DNA of 63,537 nucleotides from Octopus bimaculoides (taxonomy: Eukaryota), in contig NC_068997.1 in assembly GCF_001194135.2 (NCBI RefSeq), positions 6,775,387-6,838,923 of the forward strand, read 5' to 3'. Made by a program: the position numbers and the translations under genes. This document shows positions 18,501 through 62,649 of the stretch, piece by piece; positions within the stretch are counted from its first letter, which is position 1, and each line of letters opens with the position of its first letter. The notes under the pieces are model-generated. The model was not told the DNA's origin. It worked only from the letters and a program-made list of their open reading frames with translations, and did no database searches.

Positions 18501-20070
18501 CCTAAGTCAACCTTTATAAATATGTGCTGATCTGTTTGAACACGCGAAACATTCTTCTTACTCCTACAAGAAACTTACTTGAAGTGTTTTTACAACTGCT
18601 GTAAGTTAATAATGTATCTCATCCTTAGACGGCTGTTGAACTTCAGCCATTATTGAGCAGACCTTTAGCATAAAGCTGGTCGGTCGATCGTCTCAAAATC
18701 CATTGTTTCAGATATACTAAGTTTCAGCGTAATTCAGGACTTGGTTCAAAAAATAAATGATTTTTTGAACCAGTTGAAGTCACACGAGATGTCGAAATAT
18801 TGTTCACTAGATAACAAATGGTACTCTTCTTTTAATTTTGACTCTATATCTTCAGGAGGAGTTACCTCAATCCTTTCTATATTATTATTATTAATAATAA
18901 TAATATTATAATAATAATAACAGTATGTATTGCAAAAGTCAACATTACTTGGAACTGCACGCGTATTACGTTAAGTACTGTTTATCTGAAATCCCCCGGT
19001 AGATACATCTTCAATCAACAACCTCACGATATTGTATACTGTGCGACGACTATAATAATAATAATAATAATAATAATAATGGTTTCAAACTTTGGTACAA
19101 GGCCAGCAAGTTTGGGGAAGGGGTTGAGTCGATTAAATCGACTCCAGTTTTCAACTGGTCCTTATTATATCGATCTCGAAAGGATGAAAGACAAAATTCC
19201 TTTCCAGTTCAAATAGTTATTATTACCATCCTTGCCACAACCACTAACATTGTCTTCATCATCATTAATCGATCTTCCAGAATCATTAGTACGCCGGACA
19301 AAATGTTTAGCAGCATTTCGACCGTCTTTATGTTCTGAGTTAAAATTCCGCCGAGGCCGACTTTGCCTTTCATCCTTTTTGAGAGTCGATAAATTAAGTA
19401 CCAGTTGGACATTTGAGTAATCGACTTGCCCACTCCTCTGAAATTGCTGGCTTTGTGCCAAAATAGGAAGCAATAAAACAATTATTATCATTATTACCAT
19501 CCTCGCCACAACTACTACCACACTCATTATTATTCATATAATAACATAATAATAATAAAATAATAATAATCATTTCTACTTTAAGTCCAAAGCCTGAAAT
19601 TTGAGAGAGTGGGGTAGCTACACGATTATACTGATCCCAATGGTTTAGCTGTTAGAAACTTTTTCAAAACTTTAATTTAGAAACTGTTGAAAAAAAAAAT
19701 GAGTGGAAATAGGGATTGAGTTTGCACACGTGTTTTATAGAAGCTGGTCCTCATTAATTAAATAACTATCTTAGCTGAAGACGACAAAGAAATGAAACCT
19801 TTGTTTTATATTTGCAGACCAGTTGGAACTGAATGGTGCAGAGGAAGCAGTGTCCGAGCCAAATTGTGTAATACCCATGTACGTACTATTATAATACTAT
19901 ATAAGTCATGTGTCGCTTATACTGTTTGACTAGCATATTATTAAATGCCCTGTCGGGCTGAATAGCGAATAATCTCTGTACACTTAATTGCACAATATTT
20001 TCCGTGATCATCGATTTGATGATCAACTTCAAGTAATTCCAATTTAAAAATACTTATAAAAACCACATTT

Positions 20071-20111
<41 letters not shown>

Positions 20112-23100
20112 TAGAATTTGTAAAAGTCTTCTAGAGACAGACTTTAATAATTACTTTCTTTTAGTAAAAGTTACATATTGCAAACTAATTACTAATTTAT
20201 AAGCAACTTTCTTTATTATAGTATAATGATAGTATTTAATACGTGTGTGTATATANNNNNNNNNNNNNNNNNNNNNNNNNNNNNNNNNNNNNNNNNNNNN
20301 NNNNNNNNNNNNNNNNNNNNNNNNNNNNNNNNNNNNNNNNNNNNNNNNNNNNNNNNNNNNNNNNNNNNNNNNNNNNNNNNNNNNNNNNNNNNNNNNNNNN
20401 NNNNNNNNNNNNNNNNNNNNNNNNNNNNNNNNNNNNNNNNNNNNNNNNNNNNNNNNNNNNNNNNNNNNNNNNNNNNNNNNNNNNNNNNNNNNNNNNNNNN
20501 NNNNNNNNNNNNNNNNNNNNNNNNNNNNNNNNNNNNNNNNNNNNNNNNNNNNNNNNNNNNNNNNNNNNNNNNNNNNNNNNNNNNNNNNNNNNNNNNNNNN
20601 NNNNNNNNNNNNNNNNNNNNNNNNNNNNNNNNNNNNNNNNNNNNNNNNNNNNNNNNNNNNNNNNNNNNNNNNNNNNNNNNNNNNNNNNNNNNNNNNNNNN
20701 NNNNNNNNNNNNNNNNNNNNNNNNNNNNNNNNNNNNNNNNNNNNNNNNNNNNNNNNNNNNNNNNNNNNNNNNNNNNNNNNNNNNNNNNNNNNNNNNNNNN
20801 NNNNNNNNNNNNNNNNNNNNNNNNNNNNNNNNNNNNNNNNNNNNNNNNNNNNNNNNNNNNNNNNNNNNNNNNNNNNNNNNNNNNNNNNNNNNNNNNNNNN
20901 NNNNNNNNNNNNNNNNNNNNNNNNNNNNNNNNNNNNNNNNNNNNNNNNNNNNNNNNNNNNNNNNNNNNNNNNNNNNNNNNNNNNNNNNNNNNNNNNNNNN
21001 NNNNNNNNNNNNNNNNNNNNNNNNNNNNNNNNNNNNNNNNNNNNNNNNNNNNNNNNNNNNNNTGGGGAAAGGGGAAAATGTCTAAAAATATAACACAATT
21101 GCTCCACATCCTTTCTTGAGCACTCAATTACTAATGGGGTCGTAGGAGCACCATTGTGAAATGACGCGTGTCTTGTGCACTTTAAACCTGGCAGAGTCCC
21201 TTCCCTCTCCAATCGAATTTTCCATGAAAGAAGGATGAAGAGAAGAGTAGACTTCATTCAATTCTCACTGAATGTAGACTTCAGTGAGAATTGAATTCAG
21301 AGTGGAGGGTCAGAACGAATTCCTTAAGTCTTTCTCTCCGACGATCCAACGACTCTGCTTACTCACCGATGATCGCTTCTATTTAATGCCTGATGGAAGA
21401 GAAAGTTTTAATTTATGTCGAATATTGTCTATATGTGAACAAAAAATTATTAAGGAAAAAATTAAAAAAAACCTAATTCTTCTATTTCTACATCTAACAG
21501 AACTTCGTTACTTCGTCCAATATCCACTTCGCTCAATTAAAGGTTTTGATGATCTTCATCGCCATTTCAACGTAAGTCCCTCGGAGTGTGCGTCTCTTTG
21601 TCTGAGAAATAATGATTGTCATTCTTTTGAATATAAAAGAGAACATCGAAAATGTGATCTTTCAACCAAAACAACGTCAAATCAAATGCTGAATGTGCAA
21701 GAGTATTGGGATCTGTATATACTGCCCTCACCAGGTGAGTTCTGTGTTGACCCTTTAGTATTCAGATTACGTCACAATGCTTATCAATCCACATTGATTT
21801 GAATTAATCAAGTATTATCATGCACCGTCAATATTTCTATGATGTGATTATTTAGTTTTAGACTGACATTGTAAGGTAGGTGTAAGAAGCCAGATCTGGC
21901 TGATTTAAACATAAAACAGGTAGAATATTTGGACTTGATATGGCTGGTTTAAATACAAAAGAGTTAAACTATTAGGTTGGCAACCGAGTTCCCGCCGTTT
22001 TATAAAATTTAAGGTTTTTAAAAGGTTTAATAAAAAATAACAACTAATTAATCAATAATGTATTCACCCTTGTTGTTTACAACTTCTTCCCAACGTTTAA
22101 CAAGATTTTCAATACCTCGTTGGTAGAAATCACCCGATTTCGACTTGAAAAATTGATCCAGCTAAGCTCTCGATTCTGCATCAATATTGAGCGAAACTCC
22201 GCGCATAACATTTGAAAGAGATGGAACGAGGTGGAAATCCGTTGGTGCCAAATAAGAAGAGTACAGTGGATGTGGCAGCACTTCCCAGCCATGCGTTTGA
22301 GTGGCTTCCTTGGTCATATTGGCGATATGACGGTGGGTGTTATCGTGCAGCAGAAAAACGCCAACACAATAGTATTGGAGTTTCTTCTTTTGACCATTTT
22401 GTAAATTTCGGGTGAAATTGCAGCTATCTGCAGAAATTTAATTTAGCATGAAATAATAAAAGCAACAGTGAATGTAACTTTTTTGTAAACATCCCAACAA
22501 ACATTTGAATATAATCCAGTAGACATTTGTATAAATAAAGTATTTATAATTTTATTGATACAGATTTCCATATTTACAACCATTCACATAAATTTAGAAA
22601 TCTAGAAAGTATCTCAGATAGAAAGCTGCATTTAAGTTTGATAACAAACTGTTCAATTATGGTGTTATATTGTAAATTAATATAAGAGCTGTCTCCACTG
22701 AATATGTCGATGCGAACAAATGGGTCCGCAATACCATCACAGCAGCGTATTCTAAAGTCTCAGTACAGGAATATAGACAAGAAACGAAGAACGGTTGACC
22801 GTAACATATCAACAGTTATTTCGAGATGAACATAAATTAATGAGATTTATAAATTGATTTGTTGTGAGGAGTGAAAAAAATCTAAGGTTTTGGCAACTCG
22901 TTTATCTTTCAAGAGAGTGAAAGCGGGTATCAAGGGAGAGAGAGGGGGAAAGAGAGGAGGAGAGTAATATTAGTACATGACAGTATCATCATGTTAGAAA
23001 ATAACGTGTAAGTCCGAGATTAATAGTTATTATGTTGTTTCTTTCCTAAATTGAAACCTCTGAAATATCTTCGGCGATTACTCATTTCCATTCCTCTTTG

Positions 23101-24931
23101 TGATTTTTTAGTCAGCGATCTATTTAAATACATTCCTAAACACTCCATCTACGGATATGACGACTTGGGCCGGATTTTCAATGCAACTGTCGAAGACTGT
23201 GCAAGAGAATGTCTTAAAAATCGATCTTGTAGGTCATTTGAATACAAACCACAACAATCGAAGTGTGATCTATCCACAGTGACAAGTAAGGAAAAACCAA
23301 TCACCACAAAGGCAGATTGGGACCATTACGAAATAGATGAGGACGGTAAGTTACCGAAACAAATTCATTTCTTTCAATAATAATAATAATAATAACAGTT
23401 ATTTAGAAAAACCCTGGCAAAACGTTTTGGGAAAGATTAAATATAAGTGAAAGAAAAACAATAAATCTTTTACCGCAAACCCATTTGATTATCATTATAT
23501 TTCAAGTAGAACCCCCGTCCCTACTTCAGTCAAAGTATGAAGAGGAAATGAAAACGCTCTGGTCTCTCGTTACTCTGTTAGTTATAGTAACAATAACAAC
23601 ATGGAGGTATGCAAATTAACAGCGTGTCGCCGCATCCACCATTTGTTGGTGATCCCCTACTCCTGGTGGATGTCACCTTTACACCACTCAAACGACAACC
23701 ATGGTTCTATTGGGGTAATCGTTGCCGGCGAGGATTTTACGAGGTCCGAGTGCAAATCTCACGTGAACTTCTTTTAGTCACCTTTTATGACATCAGAGGA
23801 AACGTAGGGTCTATTCTTTGACAATGCCGACCCTGACAAACGTGAGGACACATGGCATTGCGTTTAAAATATTGCGCTCACGATCGCGCGCGAGATCGTG
23901 GTTTAAATTCTTGGACCGAGTAATGAGTTGTGTTCTTGAGCAAAACATTTCATCTCACGTTGTTCTGCGACACCTGACGTGTGGTACACCGTGGACCTGT
24001 TCAGGTAAATTCGATTTGATGGAGGGATCGATCACAATAAATGAAATATTTGTGCAGGTTGTTCAGAAAAGAGTTGCAGAATCGTCTTTCTCGGATTATG
24101 GGAGGAGGCTACCGTCATGGTGGCTGTCGAGACGTTGAACTACTAATGACCATCACTGATAAACAATCGTTTAAGTTTTTTCCTCTAGTAAGCATACGGC
24201 CTACAATGGCTTTTAAAGCTGGTAACTGACTTAGAATTGTTGCTGCCGAAGCAGTATTCATATTCCTGTGTTGCAACTAGATGCTTGTTTTGTAAAGCAC
24301 CTTGATCGAGTACTTTCGTTTACTCTGTGAGCCTAGCTCAGCTGAAAGATTCCCGACCATTTGGATCACATATTTTTCTGCTGGAAATTCGGTGTATTCA
24401 ACTCGAGGCCTTTCAGCGTGTTTATGTCGGTGATTTGTGAGGCTAATCCTGGAGAGGCACAGTTCGCATTCGTTTCACACAAATCGTGGGACTGCTGGAC
24501 CAATAGATTCTCTTTTCCTGGCTCCTCATTATACATTAGCCCATTCTAATGAAGATTTCTGAAACTTCTGGGCACTATTGATTATTTATGTGTGCCAATT
24601 ACTTCTTTTAAGCACTGAAGACTCCTAGTCAGTTGTTTCAATCTTGTATTGAGTCAGAGAACATTTTACACAATCCTTATACATATTCCCACATAAATCT
24701 GCTCTAAGAAACAAGAGCAACTGTTAACAAATTTTGACTTTCTTTTTTTGTTTATTTTAAAATCTTTTCAATCAAACAGATAAAAAGATCGGCAAAGAAG
24801 GTTTATGTGAAGTAGAATGTGATCTTACCAGTCAGTCTAACGAAGGGGCTTCCGGACATATTGCTTTAATGCCTGATGGAACTCCTTGTAACATAAATTC
24901 CCAATGGCGCTGTCTACGAGGAAAATGTGTT
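3429..24931 (+). CDS. Gene A (spliced, whole span): ADAMTS-type secreted zinc metalloprotease with TSP1 repeat and two PAN/Apple domains inside the cysteine-rich region
   Basis: 18 GT-AG exons with consistent phases (84,55,49,250,115,155,87,101,126,126,101,80,105,164,61,[missing],234,234,152 nt). Signal peptide, prodomain [20 protein letters not shown] zinc motif, Met-turn GVMG, TSP1 WSAWS..C.R.CG.G, DGTPC motif. Exon skeleton mirrors gene B. Confidence 0.92.
4058..4112 (+). CDS. Gene A exon 2, prodomain
   Basis: ttctttctctag|[18 protein letters not shown]|gtaagt; 55 nt, phase 0-1, same length as gene B exon 2. Confidence 0.8.
6120..6168 (+). CDS. Gene A exon 3, prodomain
   Basis: [17 protein letters not shown]|gtaagt; 49 nt, phase 1-2; aligns to gene B DGFNEFHWATINADYLR. 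Confidence 0.8.
6465..6572 (-). mobile_element. tRNA-derived SINE (family A), partial
   Basis: aaaggatgaaaggcaaagtcgacctcggcggaatttgaactcagaacgtaaagac core, shared with the copies at 16.1, 19.3, 37.5, 48.9 and 63.2 kb. Confidence 0.85.
6775..7024 (+). CDS. Gene A exon 4, M12B prodomain
   Basis: ...[14 protein letters not shown]...[24 protein letters not shown]|gtaagt; typical ADAMTS prodomain ending. Confidence 0.9.
7300..8210 (-). mobile_element. Degenerate non-LTR retrotransposon (reverse transcriptase remnant)
   Basis: Frameshifted ORFs with [14 protein letters not shown]...[14 protein letters not shown], resembling YADDxxLL...GLxxNxxK; locally raised GC. Confidence 0.5.
8929..9043 (+). 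CDS. Gene A exon 5, prodomain end
   Basis: [38 protein letters not shown]; 115 nt, same length as gene B exon 5. Confidence 0.88.
10561..10715 (+). CDS. Gene A exon 6, start of catalytic domain
   Basis: [33 protein letters not shown]...[10 protein letters not shown]|gtaagt; first strand corresponds to the ADAMTS VETLVVAD motif. Confidence 0.9.
10849..10935 (+). CDS. Gene A exon 7, catalytic domain
   Basis: [29 protein letters not shown]|gtaagt; 87 nt. Confidence 0.9.
11596..11681. repeat. 43-bp tandem duplication
   Basis: gctcaattagtatgaacctatcaacc(gatt/aact)gaaaggtcgata occurs twice. Confidence 0.85.
12191..12291 (+). CDS. Gene A exon 8, catalytic domain
   Basis: [33 protein letters not shown]|gtgagt; phase 0-2. 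Confidence 0.88.
13062..13117. repeat. 14-bp tandem repeat x4
   Basis: cttccgatctgaca / cttccgatctgacc / cttccggtctggcc / cttccggtctggct. Confidence 0.85.
13850..13975 (+). CDS. Gene A exon 9, HExxH zinc motif
   Basis: [42 protein letters not shown]|gtatgt; 126 nt. Confidence 0.93.
14531..14598. repeat. 20-bp minisatellite x3.4
   Basis: taaatcttgttataatt(t/c)tt repeated, just upstream of gene A exon 10. Confidence 0.9.
14664..14789 (+). CDS. Gene A exon 10, third zinc His and Met-turn
   Basis: [41 protein letters not shown]; WSxC motif typical of ADAMTS. Confidence 0.93.
15438..15538 (+). CDS. Gene A exon 11, catalytic domain end and linker
   Basis: [34 protein letters not shown]|gtaagt. 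Confidence 0.9.
16073..16292 (-). mobile_element. Full-length family A SINE with 11-bp TSD
   Basis: Complete head-to-tail copy; aattctaggta at both 16062-16072 and 16293-16303. Confidence 0.92.
17304..17383 (+). CDS. Gene A exon 12, disintegrin-like domain
   Basis: [27 protein letters not shown]|gtgagt; 80 nt, same length as gene B. Confidence 0.88.
17549..17653 (+). CDS. Gene A exon 13, disintegrin-like domain
   Basis: [35 protein letters not shown]|gtgagt; 105 nt. Confidence 0.9.
18239..18402 (+). CDS. Gene A exon 14, TSP1 repeat
   Basis: [54 protein letters not shown]|gtaagt; 164 nt. Confidence 0.93.
19079..19200 (-). mobile_element. Family A SINE, 3' part
   Basis: tttggtacaaggccagcaag...atcgatctcgaaaggatgaaag. 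Confidence 0.75.
19288..19470 (+). mobile_element. Family A SINE
   Basis: gttctgagttaaaattccgccgaggccgactttgcctttcatcc...gtcgataaattaagtaccagt. Confidence 0.85.
19818..19878 (+). CDS. Gene A exon 15, TSP1 C-terminal half
   Basis: [20 protein letters not shown]|gtacgt; 61 nt, phase 2-0. Confidence 0.9.
21501..21734 (+). CDS. Gene A PAN/Apple exon 1
   Basis: [56 protein letters not shown]...WDLY; four-Cys PAN core; 234 nt, phase 1-1. Confidence 0.92.
21970..22430 (-). mobile_element. Mariner transposon remnant: transposase C-terminus plus 3' TIR
   Basis: Reverse strand reads [15 protein letters not shown]...[18 protein letters not shown]...[24 protein letters not shown]; TIR tattaggttggcaaccgagttcccgccgttt. 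Confidence 0.85.
23112..23345 (+). CDS. Gene A PAN/Apple exon 2
   Basis: [55 protein letters not shown]...WDHY; 234 nt, phase 1-1. Confidence 0.92.
24780..24931 (+). CDS. Gene A cysteine-rich region, second part
   Basis: [51 protein letters not shown]|gtaagt; CxxxC...DGTPC...CxxGxC pattern; 152 nt. Confidence 0.92.
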
Positions 24932-25137
24932 GTAAGTATACTATATTCGGGTTTACGATGCACTGCTATCAACACATTCAAATACCAATATTTGGGTTCC
25001 TGTTTTAAAACAGTTTGCTTAGGTATTCATTCTATTATCTCAGAAACTATTGTTACTAGAAAGTTTATTTTTGAAAATATTTAACTAAATGAAAGAAATA
25101 TTTTTCTTGACAGTCTGCTTTTATCTAACAAGTTATT

Positions 25138-25179
<42 letters not shown>

Positions 25180-25837
25180 AAATTTAGTAGGATATTAAAA
25201 TACGACTTGCTATAAACAGAGCTGTCGCTATAAAACCACAAATTACTCACTATTAAAATACACACGGCGAATACAACAAATATAACAGAAATAGGCTTAC
25301 CTTGTATGAACTACAGAAGTTAAGAATGCATATATTCCAAGATGAATTGATTTCACTTTCTGTATGAAAAACATACTTAAGCTCTTCAGCCAGACTTAAC
25401 GTAACAACATCTATTTCTGACATATTCATCACATTACACCGTGTGCGTTATTACATTTGAATGTGCCCTCGACATTCAAACACGAACATAACGTGAGCCA
25501 GTATATATAAAACTAAACAGGTATCATTACCATTATTAATAACAAGCAACACACAACAAGGAGAAAGAGACAAAAATAAAATAACACGTGTTAAATTTTT
25601 TTTCTTTTTCTAAAAGCGTTCAATGACGTTAACTGGAGTGTGGGGTTCGAGTAGACGTCATTCCACCTTTTGATTTATCATTACCATTCTTTTCATTCGA
25701 TTTTATTTTTCCTCCACTTTTGTGTTCTTTCTGTCCTTGTGTTGTTCCCTCTGTGTTCCAAAATGATTAAAAAATAGAATTCTCGAAAAAAATAGATTCC
25801 AAAATCTAAAAACGCAATAAATTCCAATTTTTTTTTT

Positions 25838-25868
25838 AAACGGCGGGAACTTAGTTCCCAACCCAATA
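25838..25868 (-). mobile_element. Mariner-type TIR, inverted relative to the TIR at 21970
   Basis: Reverse complement tattgggttgggaactaagttcccgccgttt, 27/31 identical to the 21970 TIR. Confidence 0.75.
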
Positions 25869-26403
25869 CATTAAATGGTATATATTTGGGCTGCTGTTAT
25901 TAACATNNNNNNNNNNNNNNNNNNNNNNNNNNNNNNNNNNNNNNNNNNNNNNNNNNNNNNNNNNNNNNNNNNNNNNNNNNNNNNNNNNNNNNNNNNNNNN
26001 NNNNNNNNNNNNNNNNNNNNNNNNNNNNNNNNNNNNNNNNNNNNNNNNNNNNNNNNNNNNNNNNNNNNNNNNNNNNNNNNNNNNNNNNNNNNNNNNNNNN
26101 NNNNNNNNNNNNNNNNNNNNNNNNNNNNNNNNNNNNNNNNNNNNNNNNNNNNNNNNNNNNNNNNNNNNNNNNNNNNNNNNNNNNNNNNNNNNNNNNNNNN
26201 NNNNNNNNNNNNNNNNNNNNNNNNNNNNNNNNNNNNNNNNNNNNNNNNNNNNNNNNNNNNNNNNNNNNNNNNNNNNNNNNNNNNNNNNNNNNNNNNNNNN
26301 NNNNNNNNNNNNNNNNNNNNNNNNNNNNNNNNNNNNNNNNNNNNNNNNNNNNNNNNNNNNNNNNNNNNNNNNNNNNNNNNNNNNNNNNNNNNNNNNNNNN
26401 NNN

Positions 26404-26466
<63 letters not shown>

Positions 26467-26469
<3 letters not shown>

Positions 26470-26655
26470 CTCTTTTACTTGTTTCAGTCATTTGGCTGCG
26501 ACCATGCTGGAGCACTGCTTTAAAGGGTTTTAATCGAAGGAATCGACCCCAGGACTTATTCTTTGTAAACCTAGCATTTATTTTATTGGTGTCTTTTGCC
26601 GAACCTCTAGGTTACGGGAAATTAAAAAACACCAACATCGGCTGTCAGCGATAGT
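26467..26655. mobile_element. SINE (family B)
   Basis: tttactcttttacttgtttcagtcatttggctgcgaccatgctggagcac...; a related fragment lies near 37310. Confidence 0.7.
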
Positions 26656-26691
26656 GGAAACACAAAAACACACACACACACTCTGTCTGTC

Positions 26692-26722
<31 letters not shown>

Positions 26723-29527
26723 GTGTCTGTCTGTCTGTCTGTCTCTCTCTCTCACTCACATGTTTACATACAAGTACAACCTGCATTATGCATTCTGTTT
26801 GTGTTTGAGCATGTGCACATTATTGTGGAGTTTCATAGATTTTGACTTCAAATTTGATCGATGGGTTTGTAAATTTATAAGTCCATGGGGTTGTGAATTC
26901 AGAGGTTTGTGTATATATGTATTTTCTTCTGCGAATCATGTGATATCATGAATATTTGCAAAGCACATATATCTGTGTAATTAGGGAATCCAACATAAGT
27001 TAGTAGGGACATATGTCTTTTATACATAATGTTCATATATGTTATGTAACTGATGTCTAAAGAAGAAATTATCCAGGTTGGAGGGTGGCAAAGTGGGTGG
27101 GGGATCATGTTTGAAATTTTGAAGTATTAACTGTTGCTTGTGCATATAGTGGGAGAAGGTTCAGACCAACCAGAACGTATTAAGAATGAATCGATACGTC
27201 TTGGATTCTCGCTAAATACGATTATTTAGGAAAAGAAAATAAAAAAGTTATAGAGCTTATACACTAGAACAGATCCAGTGGTGAAACTTAGAGCAAAAAC
27301 TGAATAAAGGACAGGGACTAATACTTCTTCATATCAGTGAGATAAAATATTTAGAATATAAAACTTTCAACAATACAGACGAGTATTTTTGCATCCACGC
27401 ACACGAATATTCTTACTTACATTCAGATGACTACATAAAAGTAAATGTGAGCATTCGTAATTATGAAATCCCAAATATTTCATTGTCAGATAACGATATC
27501 AGAAGAGCAATGTGTGTACATCAATAAAAACAAGACGAATAATAATAATCATAATAATAATAATAATAATAATAATTTCTTACAAAATGTTATTTGATTT
27601 GATTTACTCGAATTTATATATATATTGAAATTCTATTAGATTTATTTCGATTAAAATATTGTCAACAATATTTTCATTGCGTTATTCATTTTCTTCAAAA
27701 TAAATTCCAAACTACACCAGTTGATGAATAGGAAATTATCAACAGTGAAAGCTTTAGGAGTTATGAGGGTGACTGGAATCACTTGGCGTACAGCTTGTAA
27801 ATATTTTCTTTATCCTGAAAATGTCTGGTTCTCGAATTTCTGGAAAAGAAATATTGGCAAAATGAAACACAAGAAAAAAAAAAAGGTGTTAAATGTGACG
27901 TTGAAAACATTTCAGATGTTTTCACTGTAAATATTCATAGAAACAAAAACAATAAAAAACGTATCAAAAGCTGCTTCTTTCATCCATAAACTACGGCTCA
28001 TAGTTACCATTTTCTGCCTTTGGACCCCTTTGATTTCTCTTTTACTTCACTGGACCCTCCAGAGCCATGTTTTAAAAAATCTTATTCTTTTAGAATTATT
28101 ATTAGGAATTGTATAAAAATTGTTAAAAGTTTTTGTGTAATGTTGAAGTCTAACCAATTAATTGCAGTTAAAATTTAACAAGAAAATCTTATACGGACTC
28201 CCAAGGGCCATATGGACCCCGTTTGAGAACCACTGATTTCAAATTTGGTTCCTGAAAGTGATTCTTCTACCGTTAGAACAACAGATTTCCTTAGTTTGAA
28301 CCTTCTCATTTCCTCTAATTGCATTTGGTTTGTCTTTACGGTACTTATATTGTACTTTCTTACGACGTTTCCTGCAGGCCAGCAGTAAAAGTCCCCCGCT
28401 TTTTTTTTTGTGTGATGGTTTTAATGGACATCAAAATTAAAATTAAGTGAAATCATAAGACTAGTTTCTCTCGCCACGTAACAAGGTTTCGTGAAACTTT
28501 TAAACGTTCAAATGAAAAGAAAAAATAAATAAATAAAATCATCATCATCATCATTTAATGTCCGTTTTCCATGCTGGCATGTGTTGGACAGTTTGACAGG
28601 AGTCGCACCAAGCTCCATTTGTCTGTTTTGGCAAGGTTTCTACAGCTGGACACCTTTCCTAACGTCAATCACTTTACAGAGCGTAGTAGATGCTTCTTAT
28701 GTGGCACCAGCTCCGGGGCTTTTTGACGATGAGGATTAAGTTGAGCAAGCAACTGAGTACCTGTCCTGAACTGATGTGTAAGTGGCCGAGTACTCCTCAG
28801 ATACGTGTATCTTAAACGTGATTCTCAAGTAGAATCCGCCTAACACGGTGTGACAAGCTAAGACTCATGAACTAACGTCCAATCCATCTGGCGGGCATCC
28901 AACATAATTTCCTTCGACCCAGTTTCATTCACATGCCTTGAGTGAATCCGAATAAAAGACACTCATTCAAGACGTCACGTAATGAATTTGAACCCGAGAC
29001 CTCATGATTGCGAAGCGATCTCCTTAGTATTTTGGTTATTCTATGTGAAACATTTATGAAATGCTTCCCTTAAATACATCATTAAGCTCTTATAAAAAGG
29101 TAATTATATACCAGAAAATGTTGTCCTTAATATTAGAAAACACGGGATGAGCACTGCTGGAACGCATTTCATCATAACTCTACTCAATAGGGACATATAT
29201 ATANNNNNNNNNNACAAATACCTATGTGAACAAATATTTCTATTGGTTTCTCCATCATACTAAGGATGGCATCTGGGAGAATCTTGGTAAAAAACTACGT
29301 CTTCTGCAAATTAACCAATAACAAGGGAACGCTTTTGTGCAGTTGATCGACTTGCTTCATGTAACAGATAAATTTTCCTGAATTACAACCTGCTAATGGG
29401 GAGAATGCTACATGAAAACAGATGAGATGGTCGTGACTGGAACGTCTTTTATCATACCTCTACTATATTAGACTAAGGTGGAATTAAACAACAGTTAAGT
29501 ATTGGAGGGCGGTGGGGCTATACTTAC

Positions 29528-29679
29528 TCGACAAGTTCCTCTTATACATCTCCACTGAGTGTTCACGTCAGTGTTACACGGTGATCCATCAGGAAGAAAA
29601 GCTACATGAACTGACGTGAGAATATCACTTTCATGAAGTGGAACACAGCTTACTTCACAAACACCATTTTGAGGGAAGT
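29528..29679 (-). CDS. Gene B cysteine-rich region, second part
   Basis: DFPQNGVCEVSCVPLHESDILTSVHVAFLPDGSPCNTDVNTQWRCIRGTCR|gtaagt; 152 nt, same length as gene A. Confidence 0.92.
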
Positions 29680-29931
29680 CTAAATAGGAAGTCAGTAACA
29701 AAAAGGGCAAACGTTATAGATTTACATATAATCTATTTATGAGCATTTGGGCGTTTAGAAATACAATTTTGGTTTTGAACAAACTTAAACAAACAGTAGA
29801 ATTATGACCCGGATTTAGACAATGCAAAGTTTATTTTTACATAATCCTTTTGATAGTTAACTGTTATGTCATGTGGATGTGTGTTGGCGTGTGTATGTAT
29901 GTATGTATATATCTATCTATCTATCTATCAA

Positions 29932-29962
<31 letters not shown>

Positions 29963-32909
29963 NNNNNNNNNNNNNNNNNNNNNNNNNNNNNNNNNNNNNN
30001 NNNNNNNNNNNNNNNNNNNNNNNNNNNNNNNNNNNNTATAAATTCTCAGAATGAGATAAAAATCCAAGGCTGTGAAAGATTTTAGAACATTTATAAATAG
30101 AAGGTCTTACAGCTGTTTCCGGGATATTTTATATATCCCTTCATCGGAGGCGGTGTGAGAAAATGGTTAAGCAATAGTTAATTTAGATAAGATATGAAAT
30201 AGAGAGTGAAGTGGAAGAATGAAAATAAACGTGAGATACGCAAAGATATTGCATTTGTAGATCCATTATTTAGGCAGAATGGTATACATAAAAGATTCCA
30301 GTACCTTGTGAGTAAGTTCCAATAGTATTTAAAATTGGTCACTCCAAGTATAGAGTTTGTACACGGTGTTATTGAATCGAGGGTTAACTATGGTCTGTCC
30401 ATAGAACTTACTCAGCATTACCTGACACCTTTGGGTCTTATTGATACCATTACCTCTCATAACCTCTCTCTCTATATATGAATGAGAAAATGAAGAAAAT
30501 AGAAAAAATTGACGTACAGACGTTATTTATTTAAAGACTGGTTTCAAATATGGAAATTTGAATTTTATTTCTGTAATTGAATTGATTGGGCGTGGAAACA
30601 GCTGAAGACAGGAATTTCTCTACAAGAATTGAAATGTCTTTTTTGTTCATTTCCTCATTCATAAAGTCTTTTAATGCCTGTGCGTTTCAATGATAGACCA
30701 ATATACTTGGTTTTCATTGTACGCTGATATAAACCGGAGAACTAGGATGCTTGCATCCCTTAAGGAACTTTAGTTCCTTGACTAAATAATATACATATAT
30801 ATATATGTGTGTGTGTTTGTTTGTATGTATGTACTGACTTAAAACGCTTGCATAGACACTGCTGATACATCTGTCAGTGATGTCCATGGTCATCTTACGA
30901 GTAGACAGTCATCATTATGAATAGAGGTTGTTAGCTGAGTGAGCAATGTAACATAACTTTCATGGTCATCAAGGAGCATCTATGCGGTTGTTCGACCTGC
31001 AACAAATAGCAGACGACAACAACAACCGTCAGTTCTCACCAATTCGACCAACCATTATCTATGTAGATAATACAAAACCATCACCCTAAAGGAAAACAAT
31101 TTCCTTTAGAGAAGTTTATTAAACACACGTTAAGGGTTTCAAAAACATAATCGGCTGTTCACATCATTAAAGATGGAGGAGTTGGTAGAAAGGTGTATTT
31201 TACATTGTTTATTATTGTTGCATACGACTCCAATAACCCATCGTTCTACAACATGACAATGATGATAATACAAATAATATCAAAATATTAGTAATACTAC
31301 GTACACCGTTGTGCTACCACGGAGTGGCAACCATCAGGAAGTGTATCAAAGACATATTAACTGGTGAAGTTCATTTCTTTTTGAAGTGGCATAGAGCGGG
31401 TGAATTACCGGAAATCGATTATCGCCTTATCAGGAGAATACAAGGTTAGAGGGTTTGCATGGGCAAAGTACGAATTAAGTTCTGCTAAAATGGTTACATA
31501 TAGATATAATATCATTTACCTTTGTCATGTCTTTCATAGAAGTCCCAAAAGTCATTCGAATTTAAGTCGTGTGTCTTCGTAGATATGGAAGATAAATCAC
31601 ATTTTCGGTTCGTTGGTTTATATTCGAAGGAATAACATTTTTTAGTTACAAGACATGCACTGGCACATTGTTCCAAAGACACATTATTTTTTCTGCCCAA
31701 ATCATCGAATCCTCTCACAGATCTGTTCGGATACATCTTAAAGTATTTTAAGGCTGGAAAATATTTCAATTTTGGAAAATATTTTAATATTCAACATGTG
31801 TGAAAATTAAAGCAGATATTCGAAAAGGTTAATATTGAGAAAATATTTAATTTATTTTTGCTGTCATATTAATATCAAAAATAATTATCAATTTAGTAAG
31901 GTAACTTTATAATTATTAAGCTGGCGTTGGAAATTAGCAGGAACGTTTTGATGGAACGTTTAAATTAAAACTCCTTTCGAAAAGGACGTTCGCATTATAG
32001 AACTAGGGCTATTCTTAGACGAATCAGTAACAAAAAGGTTAATACGAAATACGTATTCTGCTAATACGCATATATAATCCTTAATGGCACCACTGTATGT
32101 GAGGAACATTATAGGGGTGAGGTAGCATCGGATACGCAACTACAATAATAAAACTGAAACTGAGTGTCAAATAAAAAAAAGTTACAAAATATTATAAATA
32201 AATTTAGCATAAATAAAAGAAAGGTGTGTTTAGTCGGCATATGACGAATAGAATCTTTCGCTCTGATTTTATTTAAATTTACCAGCTAAGCAATGGTGTT
32301 TACTGTGTAACTAAGGGCATTTGTCCATACTTAACAACGCAAGTCTTCTTTTAAAATTCAAGAGTAACGTAATGTCATAATATTCGTGAGACACATTGTT
32401 ACTTCAAGAAAACGCTGCAAAATTTAACATCAACTGGAAATTATTGAACAATTGCAGACCTCACCTCAACAGTAATAGGAAGTCCAGACTTTGCTTAGAA
32501 AAGTGTTATATTAAAGAATTCCCTTTACTCAAAGGTTTGTCACAATTCTAAAAGCGAGATGTTTTCCCCTTGTCCTCAGGACCGTAGATATATCTTAATC
32601 AACTAGTTGGCTCCACTCTAGCAGTAAGGATTGGTTCTTCATTAGAAGTCCTCTCACGATAAATAAGAGGACCCAACAGTCATACACACCCATGTGCATA
32701 CGCGATCAAATATGCTCTTCAAAAATTCCTTCTTCACTTCTCTCCCTTTTCTATCTCACTTCCTGCCTATTCTCTCTAATTCACCGTTACCCCACTCTTC
32801 ATTCCAAACACGTGTACAAAAACTTGAGGGAGACAGTTGCCTTTTGAATGTTAGTGTGAAGGACAATGGTCCCAAGGAACCATTCTAAGGGACATAGTTC
32901 TGATGGTTC

Positions 32910-32952
<43 letters not shown>

Positions 32953-34294
32953 ACACAGACATGATATTAGTATTTGCTGTTGATGTAATAAGAGCTGTAA
33001 AATGGATATAAATTTGCGCTCGAATTTTGATTCTGGTTGTTGTTACAAACGATAGCAACTAACTCAGTGATATTATTTACCTTTCCCATCTCTTTCATAG
33101 AAGTCCCATAAAGAATTTGGATTTAAGTCGTGTGCCTTCGTAGATATGGAAGATAAATCACATTTTCGGTTCGTCGGTTTATATTCGAAAGAATTACATT
33201 CTTTAGTTGAAAGACATCCATTGGCACATCCTTCCAATGACACGTTATTTATTCTGCCCAAATCATCAAATCCTTTCACAGATCTGTTCGGATACATCTT
33301 AAAGTATTTTAAGGCTGGAAAATATTTCAATATTGGAAAGCATTTTAATATTCAACAAGTGCGAAAATTAAAGGATTTATCCAAAGCAGAGACTTGAAAA
33401 GGTTTACATAGTGAAAGTATTATTTAAGTAAGTCAGAAATTCAAAAACTCTATACGTGTTCTGTTATTGTGTATGTCCTGTAAACCTTATTGGCACAAAT
33501 GAAACCGTTGTCTTCGTCTGGTTTGTAAAGAGTATTACAGCAATGAGGTAAGAACAGATTTTTAACCTTCGTAAAATTGGATTGAAATGGTTTAACAGAC
33601 GACTGAAACGCAATCTAAAATAATAAACTTAATTTACAATACAGAAGTATCATTTGTAATGAAATTTAGTTTAAAGAACAGAAGTGTTTGCTTAGTTGAT
33701 GTAAGGTAAACAAAATATTTATTCCTGGTTTTATTAAAAGATATCAACTAAGCAATAGCTTTTTGCTGTTTTAGGGTATTACGTGTGTATGTATACTCCG
33801 ATTTAAAGCGACATTTATTGACTGAAAAATGATGAGCAACTCCAACTGGAATCGAACCCACATATCAACGCTAACATGGCTCCTTGTGCATCCGATTGAG
33901 CCAGAACACTAAACCATAAATTTCAGTCAAATTTTATGTGTTAAACCGTATTGTTTACGTAAATGTCGCTTTAAATCGGTGTATATATATATATTTATCA
34001 TGCTATATGACTATATAGTTATTATTGTATAAAAGACTTTAGTAGCCACTTTTTCTCCGTAACTTATCAAGTCTCCGGGTTTGTTTACAAATATTATATG
34101 TAGTACTTGACAGTTTAAGCATCTATACATAAAATTTGACTGAAATTTGTGGGTGAGTGTTCTGGCTCAATTGGATGCGTAAGGAACCGTGTTAGCGTTG
34201 ATATGTGGGTTCGGTTTTTGTCGGAGTTAGCTCATCATTTTTCAGCTAATTGTTTAGATAAATGTCCCTTTAAATCGGAGTATATTATTATTAT

Positions 34295-34325
<31 letters not shown>

Positions 34326-35042
34326 TTCAACAAAGCATTGTCTTCTGACAGAAATGCAGAAGAAATAAATCTCAACGTGACACATAAACAGTAGAATGTA
34401 ATGACTATGGTCACATGGTTACCACGAGTGCAAGAAATATGTTACTGTTAAAGAATTACTTACTTCCGTTTGGACTGGCTAACGTTCTGCCATTGGAACT
34501 AAAGTTCTTGGAATCAAGGTAACCATACTGTAGTAACATGGTGCATACTTCAGAAGCTCGTTGTTTCACCAGTTCGAAGTAATTGCTACTGTCATTGAAA
34601 CAGGGCTGCAATGGAAAACAGTTTTTAATAGATTTACTGAGTTAGTTAGGGTGTGAGTAGGTAATTGAATTAAGAATGGTTTACAAATGAATATGTTGAG
34701 TAGCTGGAAGAATCTAGAAAGAAATAGACATACAGAATGATCTGGCTTAAAAGACACAACTGCATCGGTTGTGAATAAGGCTGCGGAATTTTACAAGAAA
34801 GGTAGACAATGCGTGAATTGTAATGTGAGAAAAACAGGTCGTTTATATAATGACATGATCAAGTTGAAACGATGATCAACAACTATTAACCATCTCTGTC
34901 TATTGAAACAATAACTAGAGATTTAATACGTTAAAGATCGTCTTGATTCTAACGAGTAGAAGTTTCCATCTTCATGTGTAATTTGAATATTAAAAATACA
35001 GCTGAGAAGTATTTTCCAATAACGATAAGAAATATGATATTT

Positions 35043-35084
<42 letters not shown>

Positions 35085-38000
35085 CCACTTCACAGCTAGT
35101 TATATAGAAATATATATATTAGTTAATTAAACTTCGGCATTGTCGGATTGTTGGATGAAATGAGTGAACTTGCAATTAAACAACTGAGATTGGTCAATAG
35201 AGACGGGCCAATTCTCTTGCAAGACAATGCTCGACCACATGTTGCACAAAGAACACCACTTAAGTTACAGGAACTGAACTTGGAAGTACTCTGTCATTCA
35301 CCAGACCTTGCACCAACTGACTATCATGTTTTCCATGTATTAGACAAATTTTTGCAAGGAAAAACTTCAAATCTGAAGAAGATACAAAAACAGCCTTTCG
35401 TGATTTCATCACCACTTGCTCTCCAGAATTTTTTGCTGCCGGCATAATTAAGCTACCGATAAAATGGCAAAATTGTGTTGATAATTTAGGTGTATACTTT
35501 GATTAACTGCATTGTTTTTTGTTGAGATAAACTTTCAGTTCAAAATCGGACATTTCATTCTTAACGACCTGATAATTAGAAATAATTATTCGGTGAGGAA
35601 AAGTCGACATTACCTACAAATTTATTTAAAGATTAAATGAATATTATTCCAGTCATTTCGAAAAGTACGATGGTCAACTTGGGACATGTTTCGATCCTAT
35701 ATTAGTCATCGTCAACAAATCGTATATATATATTTAATTACGGAAATAAACAGACTGTTTTAAAACTTAACATTTGTACACAATCTATGATGCATTAATT
35801 AAGTCGTTGTATACTATAAGCACAGAATATATTATTTGACTTGTTATTATCGTCATAAAAAAAATGAACAAAAATTTTTAATTCATTTTCAATGTACAAA
35901 ATTATAGAAATATGACATAAAAATTACCTGCACATTGCAGAGTTGGCCGCGAATTGACTGGCCTTTGCACCATTCTGTATTGACTGGCCTCCATTAAAAA
36001 TGTTAGAAAATGCAGAAAATTCAAGATAAGTAAAATTCATATCATTCTGTTCTGTAAAGTTCAAACGGTGTAAACATTAAGAGATCATAAAATTGTTATT
36101 AGGACAATTCATTACCTTAGAATTTAAATCCACATTTTTTTAAACCTCTAATCTAAAATAAAGCCAATTAAAACAGATATGAGAAATAACCATCAAGAAA
36201 TTCTCCCAAATATGATTAAAATGGTAACCAAACTCTAACAATGGAAGAACTAATTCTTCCCCCTTCTCGTATCTCTCAGTTTCTACTGTTTAGCACCGGA
36301 GACTTCATCAGAAGATACAATAGCATCAAATGTACAAACAGAGAAATTATTATTCATGCAAGAACGATGAAATGAAGCTTCTGTCTGGAGGAATAAAAAT
36401 CAAATCTTACAGTCTCATTTGATGTCGGTGTGAGATCGTTTAATAACATAGATATATGTCACATTGTTGAGTTAAATGTATAAACAATTACATACGAATT
36501 TCTTTACGTCAAATAAATCATTAAATACAAATAACGGACTGTTGTACCTGTATACACCAACAGGTAAACATAAAGGTACTTGTAGAAGAAAGTTCAGTCT
36601 TTTAGAAAAGAGTTCATATTCAATATAAATCAGTATTGTCTTAAAAGTTCATTCTCACTTCTTACTTATGAAGACTTCGTTTTAATCAATACATTTAAAG
36701 GCTATTTGGCCACCTTTTTGCATCATTTAATTTGCATTAAAAAATCATGATGGTAAATGGATCTTTTTACTAAATATATATTTCTGTTTTCCTTTTATAT
36801 TTTTATTTTCTTTCGTTAGGACATACCTTGGATTATCACATCTCCGTGTTGATATTCTGACTCCAGCACCACACGATCTACTACAATCAGTGTAAGGACT
36901 CCACTCACTCCACCCTCCACTTACAACTAATATAGGAACCCAGAGATTAGTTTCAGTAAGGTTTTCACATCTCATGTCAAAACGGCAGACCTACAAAATA
37001 ACCAATAAAGAAATTAGTCAAAAACGATATTTTAGAAGGTAACTTGGCCAGCTAATAGATTTTTATAAACTATGGCAAGTTCTTATACTAAAATTACCAA
37101 AATAATAGAATGATAAACATTGACTTTTTCATAAGGATTCAAAACCACAAACTTGAGGGAGAGGATTTAATCGACTGATACTTATTTTATCGATAACGAA
37201 AGCGTGAAAAGCAAATAAGACCTTGGTGACATTCGAACTCAGAACGTAAGGGATGCAACTAAATACCACTACATTCTCTGACACCTAATTGATTCTATCA
37301 ATCTATGGCACTGGACTGCAGCCATGCTGGAGCACTGCAATGCTTTGGGGTAACTATTTTTTTAAGCACAAAGCCTTCAAAGTTGGGGTCGATTACAACA
37401 TGTCCTCATTGTCACTGGAAAGGATTTGGGCGCGAATGGTACACAAAAGGCTGAATATTCTTTTCTACTCTAGGCACAAAGCCCGACATTTTGGGGGAGG
37501 GGGCTAGTCGATTCGATCGACTCCAGTACGCAAATGGTACTTAATTTATCGACCCCGAAAGGATGAAAGACAAAGTTGACCTCGGTGGAATTTTTATAAG
37601 TCAACGCCACATTCTACTGCATTAGCAATGCACTTTACATTATTTTGTTAAGATTATTTCAACAGAAATATTAGTGAGCGCTGATTCTTGCTTCAACGTC
37701 TCGATACGAAACGTTGTAGCAAAAATCAGTGCTGGATAATATTTCTGTAGAAATAACCTCAACAAAATAATTTAAGAAAGCAATTGTAGTTGGTATTAGT
37801 ATTGCTACAACTGCTGTTTCTAGTACAATTTCTGTTCCTTAAAATTGTCTGTTCTTGTACCATTTCAATCAAGCCTATTTACCATTCTCATTTTCATCCT
37901 ATTAAGAGAATTTCCTCGTTTGGCCGCTCATATCAACACATTTCAAACCATTTTGTACAAAGACAGTTCAACACTCCTACCAATCACCAGACTTTCAAAT

Positions 38001-41000: not shown

Positions 41001-41985
41001 GACAAACTGTTGGGAAATAAAAAAAAAGTCGTAGACATACAAAGTTGAAAATGTCTCCTGGCAACAAATTAATATCAAAATGGTTACCTTTTCAGCCAGC
41101 GTCGTAAATGCCTTGAGGAACATTGACTCCAGCCAGTCTTACGTGATCCCATCAATCCAGAACTTTCTTGAGTCATGTTACCACAGTGTGTCATTGCATC
41201 ATGCGGGATACCAAGACTGGATACCAAAAGAAAAACAATATTCCCTTTAATCGTAACAAAGTAAATATTTTGTAGGGAGTTTCTTTGTTTTCAGGGTCCC
41301 GTGAAGTTGGGTTCGTCAAATATTTTGATTCCATAATGATGTGAGCAAAGCAAGACTCAAGAATATTGTACATTAATAGAAGAAGAACGATAAACAGGAA
41401 ATGTATATGAGGCATGGTTTGTATCATCATCGCATTCACCGCTTTTGCTCCCAAAAAGCACTTTTTGACCTGGAAAACACATTCTTCTAACAACAAATAT
41501 GTTTTTCACTTCTAAAGGGTCTGGAAACAAAGAAGCACTATATATGGAATAAAATCGAAAGCTGAGGAAAGTAGTGATGATCTGCATCAGCAATAGTCGT
41601 TTTTAATTAATAAATTAATTAATCAATGGATAAGTTCACATGAGATTTCAATGAGTTTAGTTTTTACGAAGAGGGAATTTAAAATTTTCAGATCTTGTTT
41701 CTCATCTGTGAATGAGACGTATAGAGTATATAAAAACCGAAAGGGAAAACGTCGTGATCATGATAACCACCTCATTACAATCTTAAACAACTTGAAAGCC
41801 TGTTTCGCGACCTGCTCAAAATAATATTAAAAAAAAATCTCTCTCAAATGATATTCTAGAACCTTTAAAAAAAAAAAAGGAGAAGCATTGGATAATGTGG
41901 TTGAATCTATACAATGTCTGATTAAATTACGGCATGACCAAGTCGATAATGGCTCTGATCATAAAGATTTACTCGGGGGTTGGAT

Positions 41986-43810: not shown

Positions 43811-44340
43811 TATATGTGAGTGTGTGTTCGAGTGTGCGGCTGTTCAACTCGATCGTGGACATAAAAGACAAGGTGTGTGTGTGTGCATGCGTGCGTGCGT
43901 GCGTGTGACCATGTGTTTCACTGTCCAGCTGAAAAAGTAAAGAAATTTTTAAAATTACGGAAATTGCCGAATATATAGATAAAACATAAGGATTTTCATT
44001 TTCGTGATACTATCTCCGAAGGAATACCAATATCGAATGACTTGTATATTTATTATATATTCTTTATCTCAGCCCTCCAAACACAAAAGGGATGAAAACT
44101 TACTTATGTGCGAGCTCATGACTTAATGTATTCCGAGATAACCACTCCCAAGATCTTGACAGCGAGCATTTTGCTGGTGTACAAGCTGCAGCTGACATTG
44201 AGAGTCCAAGTGCAAAACTACCCCGGACTCTGTGAAATAAAACGAGAAACAATCATTCATTAAATACAATCAAATGTTATTGATTGTCAGTAAAAATATT
44301 TGTCAACAAATACTAAAGAAAAACTCTATATCATGTCTCC

Positions 44341-60086: not shown

Positions 60087-60432
60087 GTGGAGGCGCAATG
60101 GCCCAGTGGTTAGGGCAGCGGACTCGCGGTCATAGGATCGCGGTTTCGTTGTGAGTGTTTATTGAGCGAAAACACCTAAGGCTCCGGCAGGGGATGGTGG
60201 CGAACCCTGCTGCACTCTTCTACCACAACTTTCTCTCACTCTTACTTTCTGTCTCTGTTGTACCTGTATTTCAAAGGGTCAGCTGTGTCACGCTGAATAT
60301 CCCCGAGAACTATATTAAGGGTACACGTGTCTGTGGAGTGCTCAGGCACTTGTACGTTAATTTCACGAGCAGGCTGTTCCGTTGATCGGATCGACTGGAA
60401 CCCTCAACGTCGTAAGCGACGCAGTGCCAACA
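60087..60432 (+). mobile_element. Family C SINE with internal deletions
   Basis: Same head and body as the other copies; TSD acaatgca(a/g)ca at 60076-60086 and 60433-60443. Confidence 0.9.
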
Positions 60433-62510: not shown

Positions 62511-62649
62511 ATACCAGTCAGTCCCCATCTCCGCAAGATACTTCCTCATCTGCTGGGACTATGTGGCATGTGGTCGAGCCAACACAAGCCATCAACCCAT
62601 TCGAATTCGGATCCTCAGTGAAGAGAACACGGTAAGGCATTTGATTCGG

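Follow-up and report, generated by a model that had tools for sequence, protein, structure and literature searches.

Paired class 1-1 PAN exons in two octopus ADAMTS-like genes, a probable product of exon shuffling into a phase-1 intron

A stretch of 63,537 nucleotides (nt) from the Octopus bimaculoides genome (assembly GCF_001194135.2, contig NC_068997.1, positions 6,775,387 to 6,838,923, hereafter the window) holds two genes, A and B, for ADAMTS-like zinc metalloproteases, each of which carries two exons that encode one PAN domain apiece. All four exons are 234 nt long, have phase-1 introns on both sides and appear to interrupt the Cys-rich region of the protein. We conclude, at a probability of roughly 0.8, that a PAN module was shuffled into an ancestral phase-1 intron of a cephalopod ADAMTS-like gene and that it came to reside there in two copies. 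It is established that class 1-1 modules have a part in exon shuffling (PMC8001218). Two close counterparts of the empty site, in an octopod paralog and in a fish gene, were recovered together with a set of octopod genes that are built from PAN exons of the same format.

The gene A exons, on the plus strand, lie at 21501-21734 (A1) and 23112-23345 (A2), and those of gene B, on the minus strand, at 33081-33314 (B1) and 31520-31753 (B2). On the coding strand all four have AG directly before them and GT (as GTAAG or GTGAG) directly after. Two frames of every exon contain stops and the sole open one is at offset 2, with two leading bases and one trailing base, which places phase-1 introns on both sides. 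All four translations match Pfam PAN_1 (E values of 1.7e-10 to 7.7e-12, with 2.8e-10 also recorded for B1) over profile positions ~3-74 of 76, at 40-45 bits per exon compared with a gathering cut-off of 21.4. The match falls within the 77 residues of each exon, so that the exon edges are the domain edges. Each module has four Cys in the pattern C-x3-C-x5-C-x11-C, and the outer disulfide pair of the apple type is absent. Protein identity among the four copies is 42-82%, and their equal length is thus explained by common descent; chance is not at issue. A tblastn search of the whole window found no fifth PAN copy. The four 234-nt phase 1-1 PAN exons that the initial annotation had proposed from the letters are therefore borne out by their AG/GT flanks, their single open frame, their PAN_1 matches and the exact RNA joins described below.

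In gene B the exon upstream of the PANs (34464-34605, minus strand, 142 nt, phase 0-1) encodes the putative N-terminal half of the Cys-rich domain and is found in an RNA contig of run X18. The downstream exon (29528-29679, minus strand, 152 nt, phase 1-0) encodes the putative C-terminal half with its CxxxC...DGSPC...CxxGxC pattern. When 34605-34464 is joined straight to 29679-29528 the frame is open, and splice sites and frames agree with the earlier description of the gene B PANs as lying between a phase 0-1 and a phase 1-0 exon that are in frame without them. Among the RNA junctions of gene B, 34464>33314 was recovered in run X18 and 33081>31753 in run X20, the join 31520>29679 is read from loose ends in X18 and X15, and 29528>27839 was seen in four runs. 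The latter leads to the last coding segment (27810-27839, minus strand), which encodes KFENQTFSG and the stop, corresponds to the C-terminus of the database protein P0001 and belongs to an exon that runs on as 3' untranslated region. In gene A the junctions 21734>23112 and 23345>24780 were each recovered in four runs, and the exon downstream of the PANs (24780-24931, plus strand, 152 nt, phase 1-0) is the homolog of 29679-29528.

Several assembly gaps fall in this region. Two of them, 29963-30036 and 29204-29213, are within introns of gene B; the RNA is spliced over both, and they are therefore harmless, leaving the frame unaffected. The gap at 20256-21062 probably hides the gene A phase 0-1 exon, the homolog of 34605-34464. 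The gene A transcript directly 5' of 21501 is known from RNA only, where it reads ...CTGACCTTTTTTCT, ...CTGACCTTTTTTCTG and ...ACTGGGAGATCTCTTTCTGACCTTTTTTCT+G, and because this sequence is missing from the window letters the upstream exon is probably located in this N run, into which a DNA contig of X12 reaches by 668 nt. A further gap at 25907-26403 probably hides the last coding exon or exons of gene A; RNA past 24931 reads AATTTTGGCTCAAAAGGG... or AATTTTGGCTCAAAAGGGTATGCGAAAGTT..., likewise not among the window letters. Thus the claim that the PAN exons occupy the same intron position in both genes holds directly for gene B, and for gene A it holds by way of the RNA and not of the assembly. 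The public gene A model (XP_014774985.1) jumps from ...CNTH to the first PAN, skipping the exon seen in RNA, and also runs past the donor at 24931 into the intron (tail VSILYSGLRC...). Both defects are due to the assembly gaps.

Given that the gaps are many and have damaged the public gene A model, one might ascribe the repeated 234-nt exons, or the places where they stand, to mis-assembly around the N runs. We consider this explanation scarcely credible since each junction recurs in independent RNA contigs (at least seven runs), the DNA runs contain 98% of the sampled words of 31400-33400, and the four PAN exons differ from one another in sequence.

The position of the PAN pair relative to the ADAMTS fold was approached by removing the PANs from the proteins. 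The two flanking exons then line up with canonical ADAMTS Cys-rich domains, Cys for Cys (...QC..., CxLxC...DGTPC...CxxGxC), and a profile that includes the flanking exons matches the Cys-rich domain of ADAMTS13 (3GHM/3VN4) as one stretch with an E value of 1e-15. Based on this correspondence of motifs and exons, and not on fold, the PAN pair is predicted to be inserted within the Cys-rich domain and not between domains. In a MAFFT alignment that kept the PANs, the CxxxC of the Cys-rich region was put onto the CxxxC of the PAN; we rejected this as an artefact, as the alignment is clean once the PANs are removed. The C-terminal (GCD...) part of the Cys-rich domain is missing from the proteins of both genes.

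The first point of comparison for the insertion is a relative that has no PAN. We scanned 1.84 billion representative proteins with HMMER and considered the best 150 hits, among which the best-scoring full-length PAN-less relative is P0020, an O. vulgaris protein named 'ADAMTS14' with 30-33% identity. Its 90% cluster includes members from O. sinensis and from O. bimaculoides (the latter XP_014788797.1). The P0020 gene has an upstream exon (L005:50440-50575, encoding PCPSD...RAYGGK+G, 136 nt, phase 0-1) that is the homolog of 34605-34464, and a downstream exon (YNDDCDVHC...CFRGKCQ, phase 1-0) that is followed by a phase-0 intron. Between the two, at the site occupied by the PANs in genes A and B, stands a single phase-1 intron of 4313 nt, placed behind the first base of a Gly codon (AAAG|gtaagt ... 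aaag|GTTAC). No PAN-like open reading frame or remnant was found in this 4313-nt intron. The gene of another protein, P0013, is intronless.

A phase-1 intron is also present in fish ADAMTS16, where it lies four residues before CxLxC (...YTKVD G|gtaag...acag|AG CAA GAT GTA TGT), and the next intron of this gene is of phase 0 after GLCE|, like octopus ...GTCR|. Two phase-0 introns accompany the site in other genes as well: the one at ...CNVQ|PC... is common to the octopus genes and a wasp ADAMTS, and the one after CxxGxCx| is common to octopus, wasp (GKCQ|KVGCD) and fish. These phase-0 introns are old intron positions of the ADAMTS ancillary region. Certain ADAMTS intron positions are reported to be common to worm, fly and vertebrates (PMC549037). 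The initial annotation had named PAN-less ADAMTS genes of other molluscs as the place to look for a phase-1 intron at the homologous site, and such an intron is found in the octopus paralog P0020 and in fish ADAMTS16 and is absent in one wasp gene.

P0020 could also be read in the opposite direction, with a PAN pair in the ancestor of the octopod short ADAMTS-like genes and a deletion of both exons in the P0020 lineage. Deleting symmetrical exons would leave exactly the structure seen in P0020, that is, one fused phase-1 intron, and P0020 shares with genes A and B both the loss of the spacer and the exon pattern after the thrombospondin type 1 (TSP1) repeat. We nevertheless regard this loss as improbable. 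Every other ADAMTS recovered is PAN-less and fish ADAMTS16 has an undivided phase-1 intron, so that a PAN-less gene with the intron is the outgroup state and PAN must have been gained at some point regardless; in addition, the P0020 intron holds no trace of a PAN.

Besides the preferred recipient site, a pre-existing phase-1 intron, there is a pool of PAN modules in matching format. In the library search (best 150 hits) the nearest PAN domains are those of octopod multi-PAN proteins from Octopus and Argonauta, at 33-36% identity. One of these genes, O. bimaculoides LOC128248838 (P0145), has each PAN on one phase 1-1 exon (240, 231, 240 and ~234 nt; PAN exons at 4980-5219, 7052-7282 and 12612-12851) and each Sushi domain on a 171-nt exon of phase 1-1. 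Its exon-to-domain boundaries match those of the ADAMTS PAN exons, as class 1-1 shuffling would predict (PMC8001218). The combination of Reprolysin, TSP1 and PAN occurred, among the examined best 150 hits, only in P0001, P0002 and the 243-residue fragment P0040. A word-based protein search added P0003, an 816-residue transcript product with the same architecture as P0001 and P0002; this search worked with a full-length query, and a 252-residue query from the PAN region missed even its own gene product. No paper on PAN-bearing ADAMTS in cephalopods was found in the literature.

A number of observations weigh against the reading of a PAN module shuffled into an old intron of the Cys-rich domain. 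On the side of the domain, hhalign of octopod-only against canonical Cys-rich sequences gives 83% probability and an E value of 9e-6 and covers the C-terminal half only, and a search of the PDB with octopod-only Cys-rich sequences returned insignificant lysozyme and MotB matches only. The N-terminal flanking exon has a weak Cys-rich identity on octopod sequences alone (Adt-1, E 7e-4). An AlphaFold model from a 3-sequence alignment is confident only for the PANs, with a separate unit per exon product (predicted local distance difference test scores, pLDDT, of 70-90), and it is therefore silent on nested packing. On the side of the intron, the wasp ADAMTS, the sole insect gene examined, has its Cys-rich region in one exon and lacks the phase-1 intron, which would fit a loss of the intron in insects. 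From the split codon to the CxxxC motif, whose first Cys follows it, there are 4-9 residues, varying by gene, in a loop with indels; the "same position" of the intron would thus mean the same loop and the same phase, not an identical aligned column. The age of the recipient intron is read from two PAN-less genes and the octopus genes themselves. On the side of the module, the octopod multi-PAN domains with their 33-36% identity are too divergent to name a specific donor, and a tree of the PANs (77 residues) does not resolve orthology among the copies.

Regarding the number of copies, P0003, which stands at much the same distance from A as from B (40-42%), also has a PAN pair at the site where these genes have theirs, which indicates that there were two PANs before the three lineages diverged. 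In P0003 the modules would measure 237 and 231 nt. The length of exactly 234 nt given in the initial annotation hence stands for genes A and B and fails as a constant of the family. The proposal that PAN was inserted into a pre-existing phase-1 intron and then duplicated fared similarly: the insertion is upheld by the empty intron of P0020 and fish ADAMTS16, and the words "then duplicated" are too simple, with two PANs in all three lineages and with a likeness between B1 and B2 that is confined to a 304-nt tract.

This tract (33070-33373 versus 31509-31812, minus strand, 89.8% identity by blastn) consists of the exon, 59 nt of the 5' intron and 11 nt of the 3' intron, and the remaining introns are unrelated. 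Between B1 and B2 the identity is 82% for protein and 89% for DNA, with 25 differences in 234 nt and synonymous (dS) and nonsynonymous (dN) divergences of 0.19 and 0.10. Other pairs among A1, A2, B1, B2 and the first PAN of P0003 have 42-51% identity, and pairs with the second PAN of P0003 have 32-38%. Along the exon, the first 39 nt of B1 and B2 contain no difference, the next 101 contain 15, the next 54 contain one and the last 40 contain nine. As judged from these sequence comparisons, the pattern indicates that the likeness may have arisen by gene conversion between old copies, with a small local re-duplication after loss as the main alternative.

According to this alternative, the loss of one ancestral copy was followed by re-duplication of its partner as a small segment, making B1 and B2 recent tandem duplicates. 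An identity far above that of all other PAN pairs, the dS of 0.19 and homology that reaches into both introns speak for it. Yet the homology ends sharply, 59 nt into the 5' intron and 11 nt into the 3' intron, and the other ~1.26 kilobases (kb) of the intervening intron are unrelated to the flanking introns, whereas a tandem copy with a period of 1561 nt at a dS of ~0.2 should leave a visible intron repeat. The differences are spaced in patches, in the manner of conversion tracts, and gene A and P0003 each have two divergent PANs, so that two copies are ancestral. Re-duplication is therefore a possibility that we keep in view and judge to be on the unlikely side.

Combining insertion with gene conversion, we propose the following history. 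The ancestral cephalopod ADAMTS-like gene would have had a single phase-1 intron at the site, which is retained in P0020 and in fish ADAMTS16. A class 1-1 PAN exon like those of which the octopod multi-PAN/Sushi genes are made would have recombined into that intron, and the PAN would have doubled before the lineages of A, B and P0003 parted. The whole gene may then have been duplicated in inverted orientation, giving genes A and B. Later, in gene B, a tract of ~300 nt of one PAN exon would have overwritten the other by gene conversion, or a small segment would have been re-duplicated. In the present proteins the PAN pair would be constitutively included, would project from a loop of the Cys-rich domain and would probably act as an exosite that binds proteins or carbohydrates in place of the missing spacer. 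The spacer of other ADAMTS proteins serves in substrate recognition. A point to be set against this last step is that any function of the PAN pair is one that we infer.

A more far-reaching version takes the PAN pair as a cephalopod-specific nested insertion that is bridged by a Cys-rich disulfide and that forms a new substrate or glycan exosite in proteases abundantly secreted by one octopus tissue, such as a salivary gland or another secretory gland. We offer it as a speculation that is unlikely as a whole. Weaker still is an add-on to it, by which one or both PAN exons would be skipped tissue-specifically.

The initial annotation had likewise suggested that alternative splicing could tune the number of PAN domains. 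The arithmetic is sound in that 234 equals 3 x 78, the exons are of phase 1-1 and the direct join is open, and forms with zero, one or two PANs accordingly all stay in frame. If splicing were modular, the PAN exons would be cassettes and 0-, 1- and 2-PAN isoforms would tune the protein. Besides the open frames, two circumstances leave room for this: contigs drop rare variants, and a single-PAN form of gene B is indistinguishable at the 5' junction, where the first 39 nt of B1 and B2 are identical. Against it, no skip joints or skip loose ends were seen in the RNA contigs of eight runs, one of them at a depth of ~6e4. In run X45 the depth over the gene A exons is 2e4-2e5, and even error variants with a depth of 15-40 are listed, yet 21734>23112 and 23345>24780 are the only junctions. 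The 5' end of A2 is reached by two contigs, which both originate in A1. The gene B contigs that lead upstream from 29679 (one each in X18 and X15) both lead to B2, and contigs of 2.4-2.6 kb in three further runs contain both PANs.

The reach of these data is that of contigs, which can miss rare forms and for which some loose ends are not displayed, so that they can reveal a skipped form but cannot prove that there is none. Coverage of the gene B exons of the PAN region is close to nil in three raw-read RNA runs, which hence give no read-level skipping rates, and the joint lists over 30040-34900 are swamped by microsatellites at ~30800, 32930 and 34300. We conclude that tuning of PAN number by splicing is not borne out in gene A, including the run at ~6e4 depth, or in the gene B contigs. 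PAN skipping is unsupported rather than excluded, and PAN exons that act as cassettes seem to us a poor prospect.

The case can be compared with several known systems. With class 1-1 shuffling as described by Patthy (PMC8001218) it shares the symmetrical phase 1-1 exon, the phase-1 recipient intron, the subsequent duplication, and the occurrence of a module of identical format and phase in unrelated genes of one genome. It differs in that the octopus recipient intron appears to lie inside a structural domain, the Cys-rich domain, and not at a domain boundary, and in that the event is confined to one lineage (all sequences found are from cephalopods), with an unoccupied paralog surviving in the same genus. 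Canonical ADAMTS proteins (ADAMTS16/18, ADAMTS13) have in common with the octopus proteins the Reprolysin domain with HExxHxxGxxHD (in gene B), the central TSP1 and the Cys pattern of the Cys-rich region, and in their genes the introns of phase 0 at CNVQ|PC (wasp), of phase 1 before CxLxC (fish ADAMTS16) and of phase 0 after CxxGxCx (both). Unlike them, the octopus genes are without a spacer, without the C-terminal part of the Cys-rich region and without further TSP1 repeats, and have a PAN pair inside the Cys-rich region. The PAN-less octopod paralog P0020 has the same series after TSP1, with an exon of the 61-nt type followed by the phase 0-1 and phase 1-0 exons, and also has no spacer, but it has no PAN exons and retains, as a short GCD... 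tail, a further part of the Cys-rich domain.

The octopod multi-PAN/Sushi proteins (P0014 of O. sinensis, P0023 and P0145 of O. bimaculoides, P0152 of O. vulgaris and P0075 of Argonauta hians) contain the nearest PANs and, in the one gene examined (P0145), have them on single phase 1-1 exons of 231-240 nt. In contrast to the window genes they have no protease domain, and 3 to 20 PANs are mixed with Sushi domains. The PAN/apple domains of plasminogen, hepatocyte growth factor (HGF), prekallikrein and factor XI are binding modules attached to a protease, and the vertebrate apple domains are each split over two exons. They belong to the same PAN_1 family and have the core four-Cys pattern, but there the PAN/apple domains are N-terminal in serine-protease relatives, whereas the octopus PANs are internal to the ancillary region of a metalloprotease. 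Also among the PAN matches was P0086 of Photobacterium damselae (WP_340642378.1), which has a beta-sandwich of the StcE-type metalloprotease, five PAN_1 domains and a crystallin/I36 domain, and which couples another protease type with PAN repeats.

A tblastx comparison between the window halves shows genes A and B to be collinear convergent paralogs. Gene A runs on the plus strand from 3429 to beyond 24931 and the coding sequence of gene B on the minus strand from 52451 to 27810. Counted once splice sites had been chosen, the exon lengths are 250, 115, 155, 87, 101, 126, 126, 101, 80, 105, 164, 61, [gap], 234, 234 and 152 nt in gene A and 238, 115, 158, 87, 98, 126, 129, 107, 80, 105, 164, 61, 142, 234, 234 and 152 nt in gene B. 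The gene B model has 100% identity to P0001, an O. bimaculoides protein of 812 residues with the NCBI name ADAMTS 1, and gene A corresponds to P0002 (XP_014774985.1, 'ADAMTS 7-like'). The two genes stand tail to tail, with the gene B stop at 27810 and the end of the last visible gene A exon at 24931; between their 3' ends lie an N run and TC/TA microsatellites (26404-26466). The pair forms an inverted duplication whose 3' ends lie close together.

Both genes encode short secreted-type ADAMTS-like zinc metalloproteases comprised of a propeptide, a Reprolysin domain, a putative disintegrin-like region, one TSP1 and a putative half-length Cys-rich region. Pfam Reprolysin (M12B) matches with E values of 2.9e-15 for gene B and 1.8e-9 for gene A, and TSP_1, above cut-off, with 4e-9 and 1e-5, respectively. 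The TSP1 exon of gene B (36827-36990, minus strand) encodes WSEWSPYTDCSRSCG and is followed by the exon 35988-35928, and that of gene A (18239-18402, plus strand) is followed by 19818-19878. The disintegrin-like region is matched by ADAMTS_CR_2 at E values of only 0.03-0.11, under the gathering score, and the Cys-rich region by Adt-1 at only 7e-4, under the cut-off. The Pfam scan gave no match to ADAMTS_spacer1 in either protein, and the gene B protein terminates 9 residues past the CxxGxC motif of the exon that follows the PANs. Because there is no spacer, 'ADAMTS-like' or truncated ADAMTS is a better name than those in the database.

The zinc motif of gene B is the canonical HExxHxxGxxHD, HELAHNLGIPHD, encoded by exons 44104-44229 and 41088-41216. 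In gene A it reads HEIAHGIDIPHD (exons 13850-13975 and 14664-14789), with Asp replacing the conserved Gly, as is also the case in P0003. Judged by its residues, the motif is intact or near-intact in the proteins of both genes. Gene A reaches a contig depth of ~2e4-2e5 in RNA run X45 and of ~10-15 in three runs in which full transcripts were assembled; gene B has a depth of ~700 in run X18 and hardly appears in the three raw-read RNA runs. Expression of the two genes differs, probably in a tissue-specific manner, and the very high depth of gene A in run X45 suggests a secretory tissue.

Elsewhere in the window, short interspersed repeats of two families in the introns and flanks of both genes gave spurious tblastx matches (19274-19470, 48845-49033, 37463-37593 and 6403-6572, and also 28768-28857, 50579-50668 and 60155-60400). 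An open reading frame at 62622-63053 on the plus strand contains a reverse-transcriptase-like sequence (REHGKAFDSVDIDVLWRILM...) and is probably a retroelement fragment.

The case is a fresh example of well-known exon shuffling and not a new kind of process, and it alters no general principle. Its practical yield is a correction of XP_014774985.1, which is without one exon and extends into an intron, and the recognition that the names 'ADAMTS 1' and 'ADAMTS 7-like' mask a distinct, spacer-less and PAN-bearing subfamily. Four pieces are visible together here, namely the occupied site in two paralogs, the empty paralogous site in the same genus, the vertebrate intron and the matching pool of PAN exons. 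They can be used for dating the gain of a domain in cephalopods and for asking how a module tolerates insertion within another domain. If the PAN pair were indeed a nested exosite, the locus would represent a datable instance of exon shuffling that yielded a functional innovation within a folded domain.

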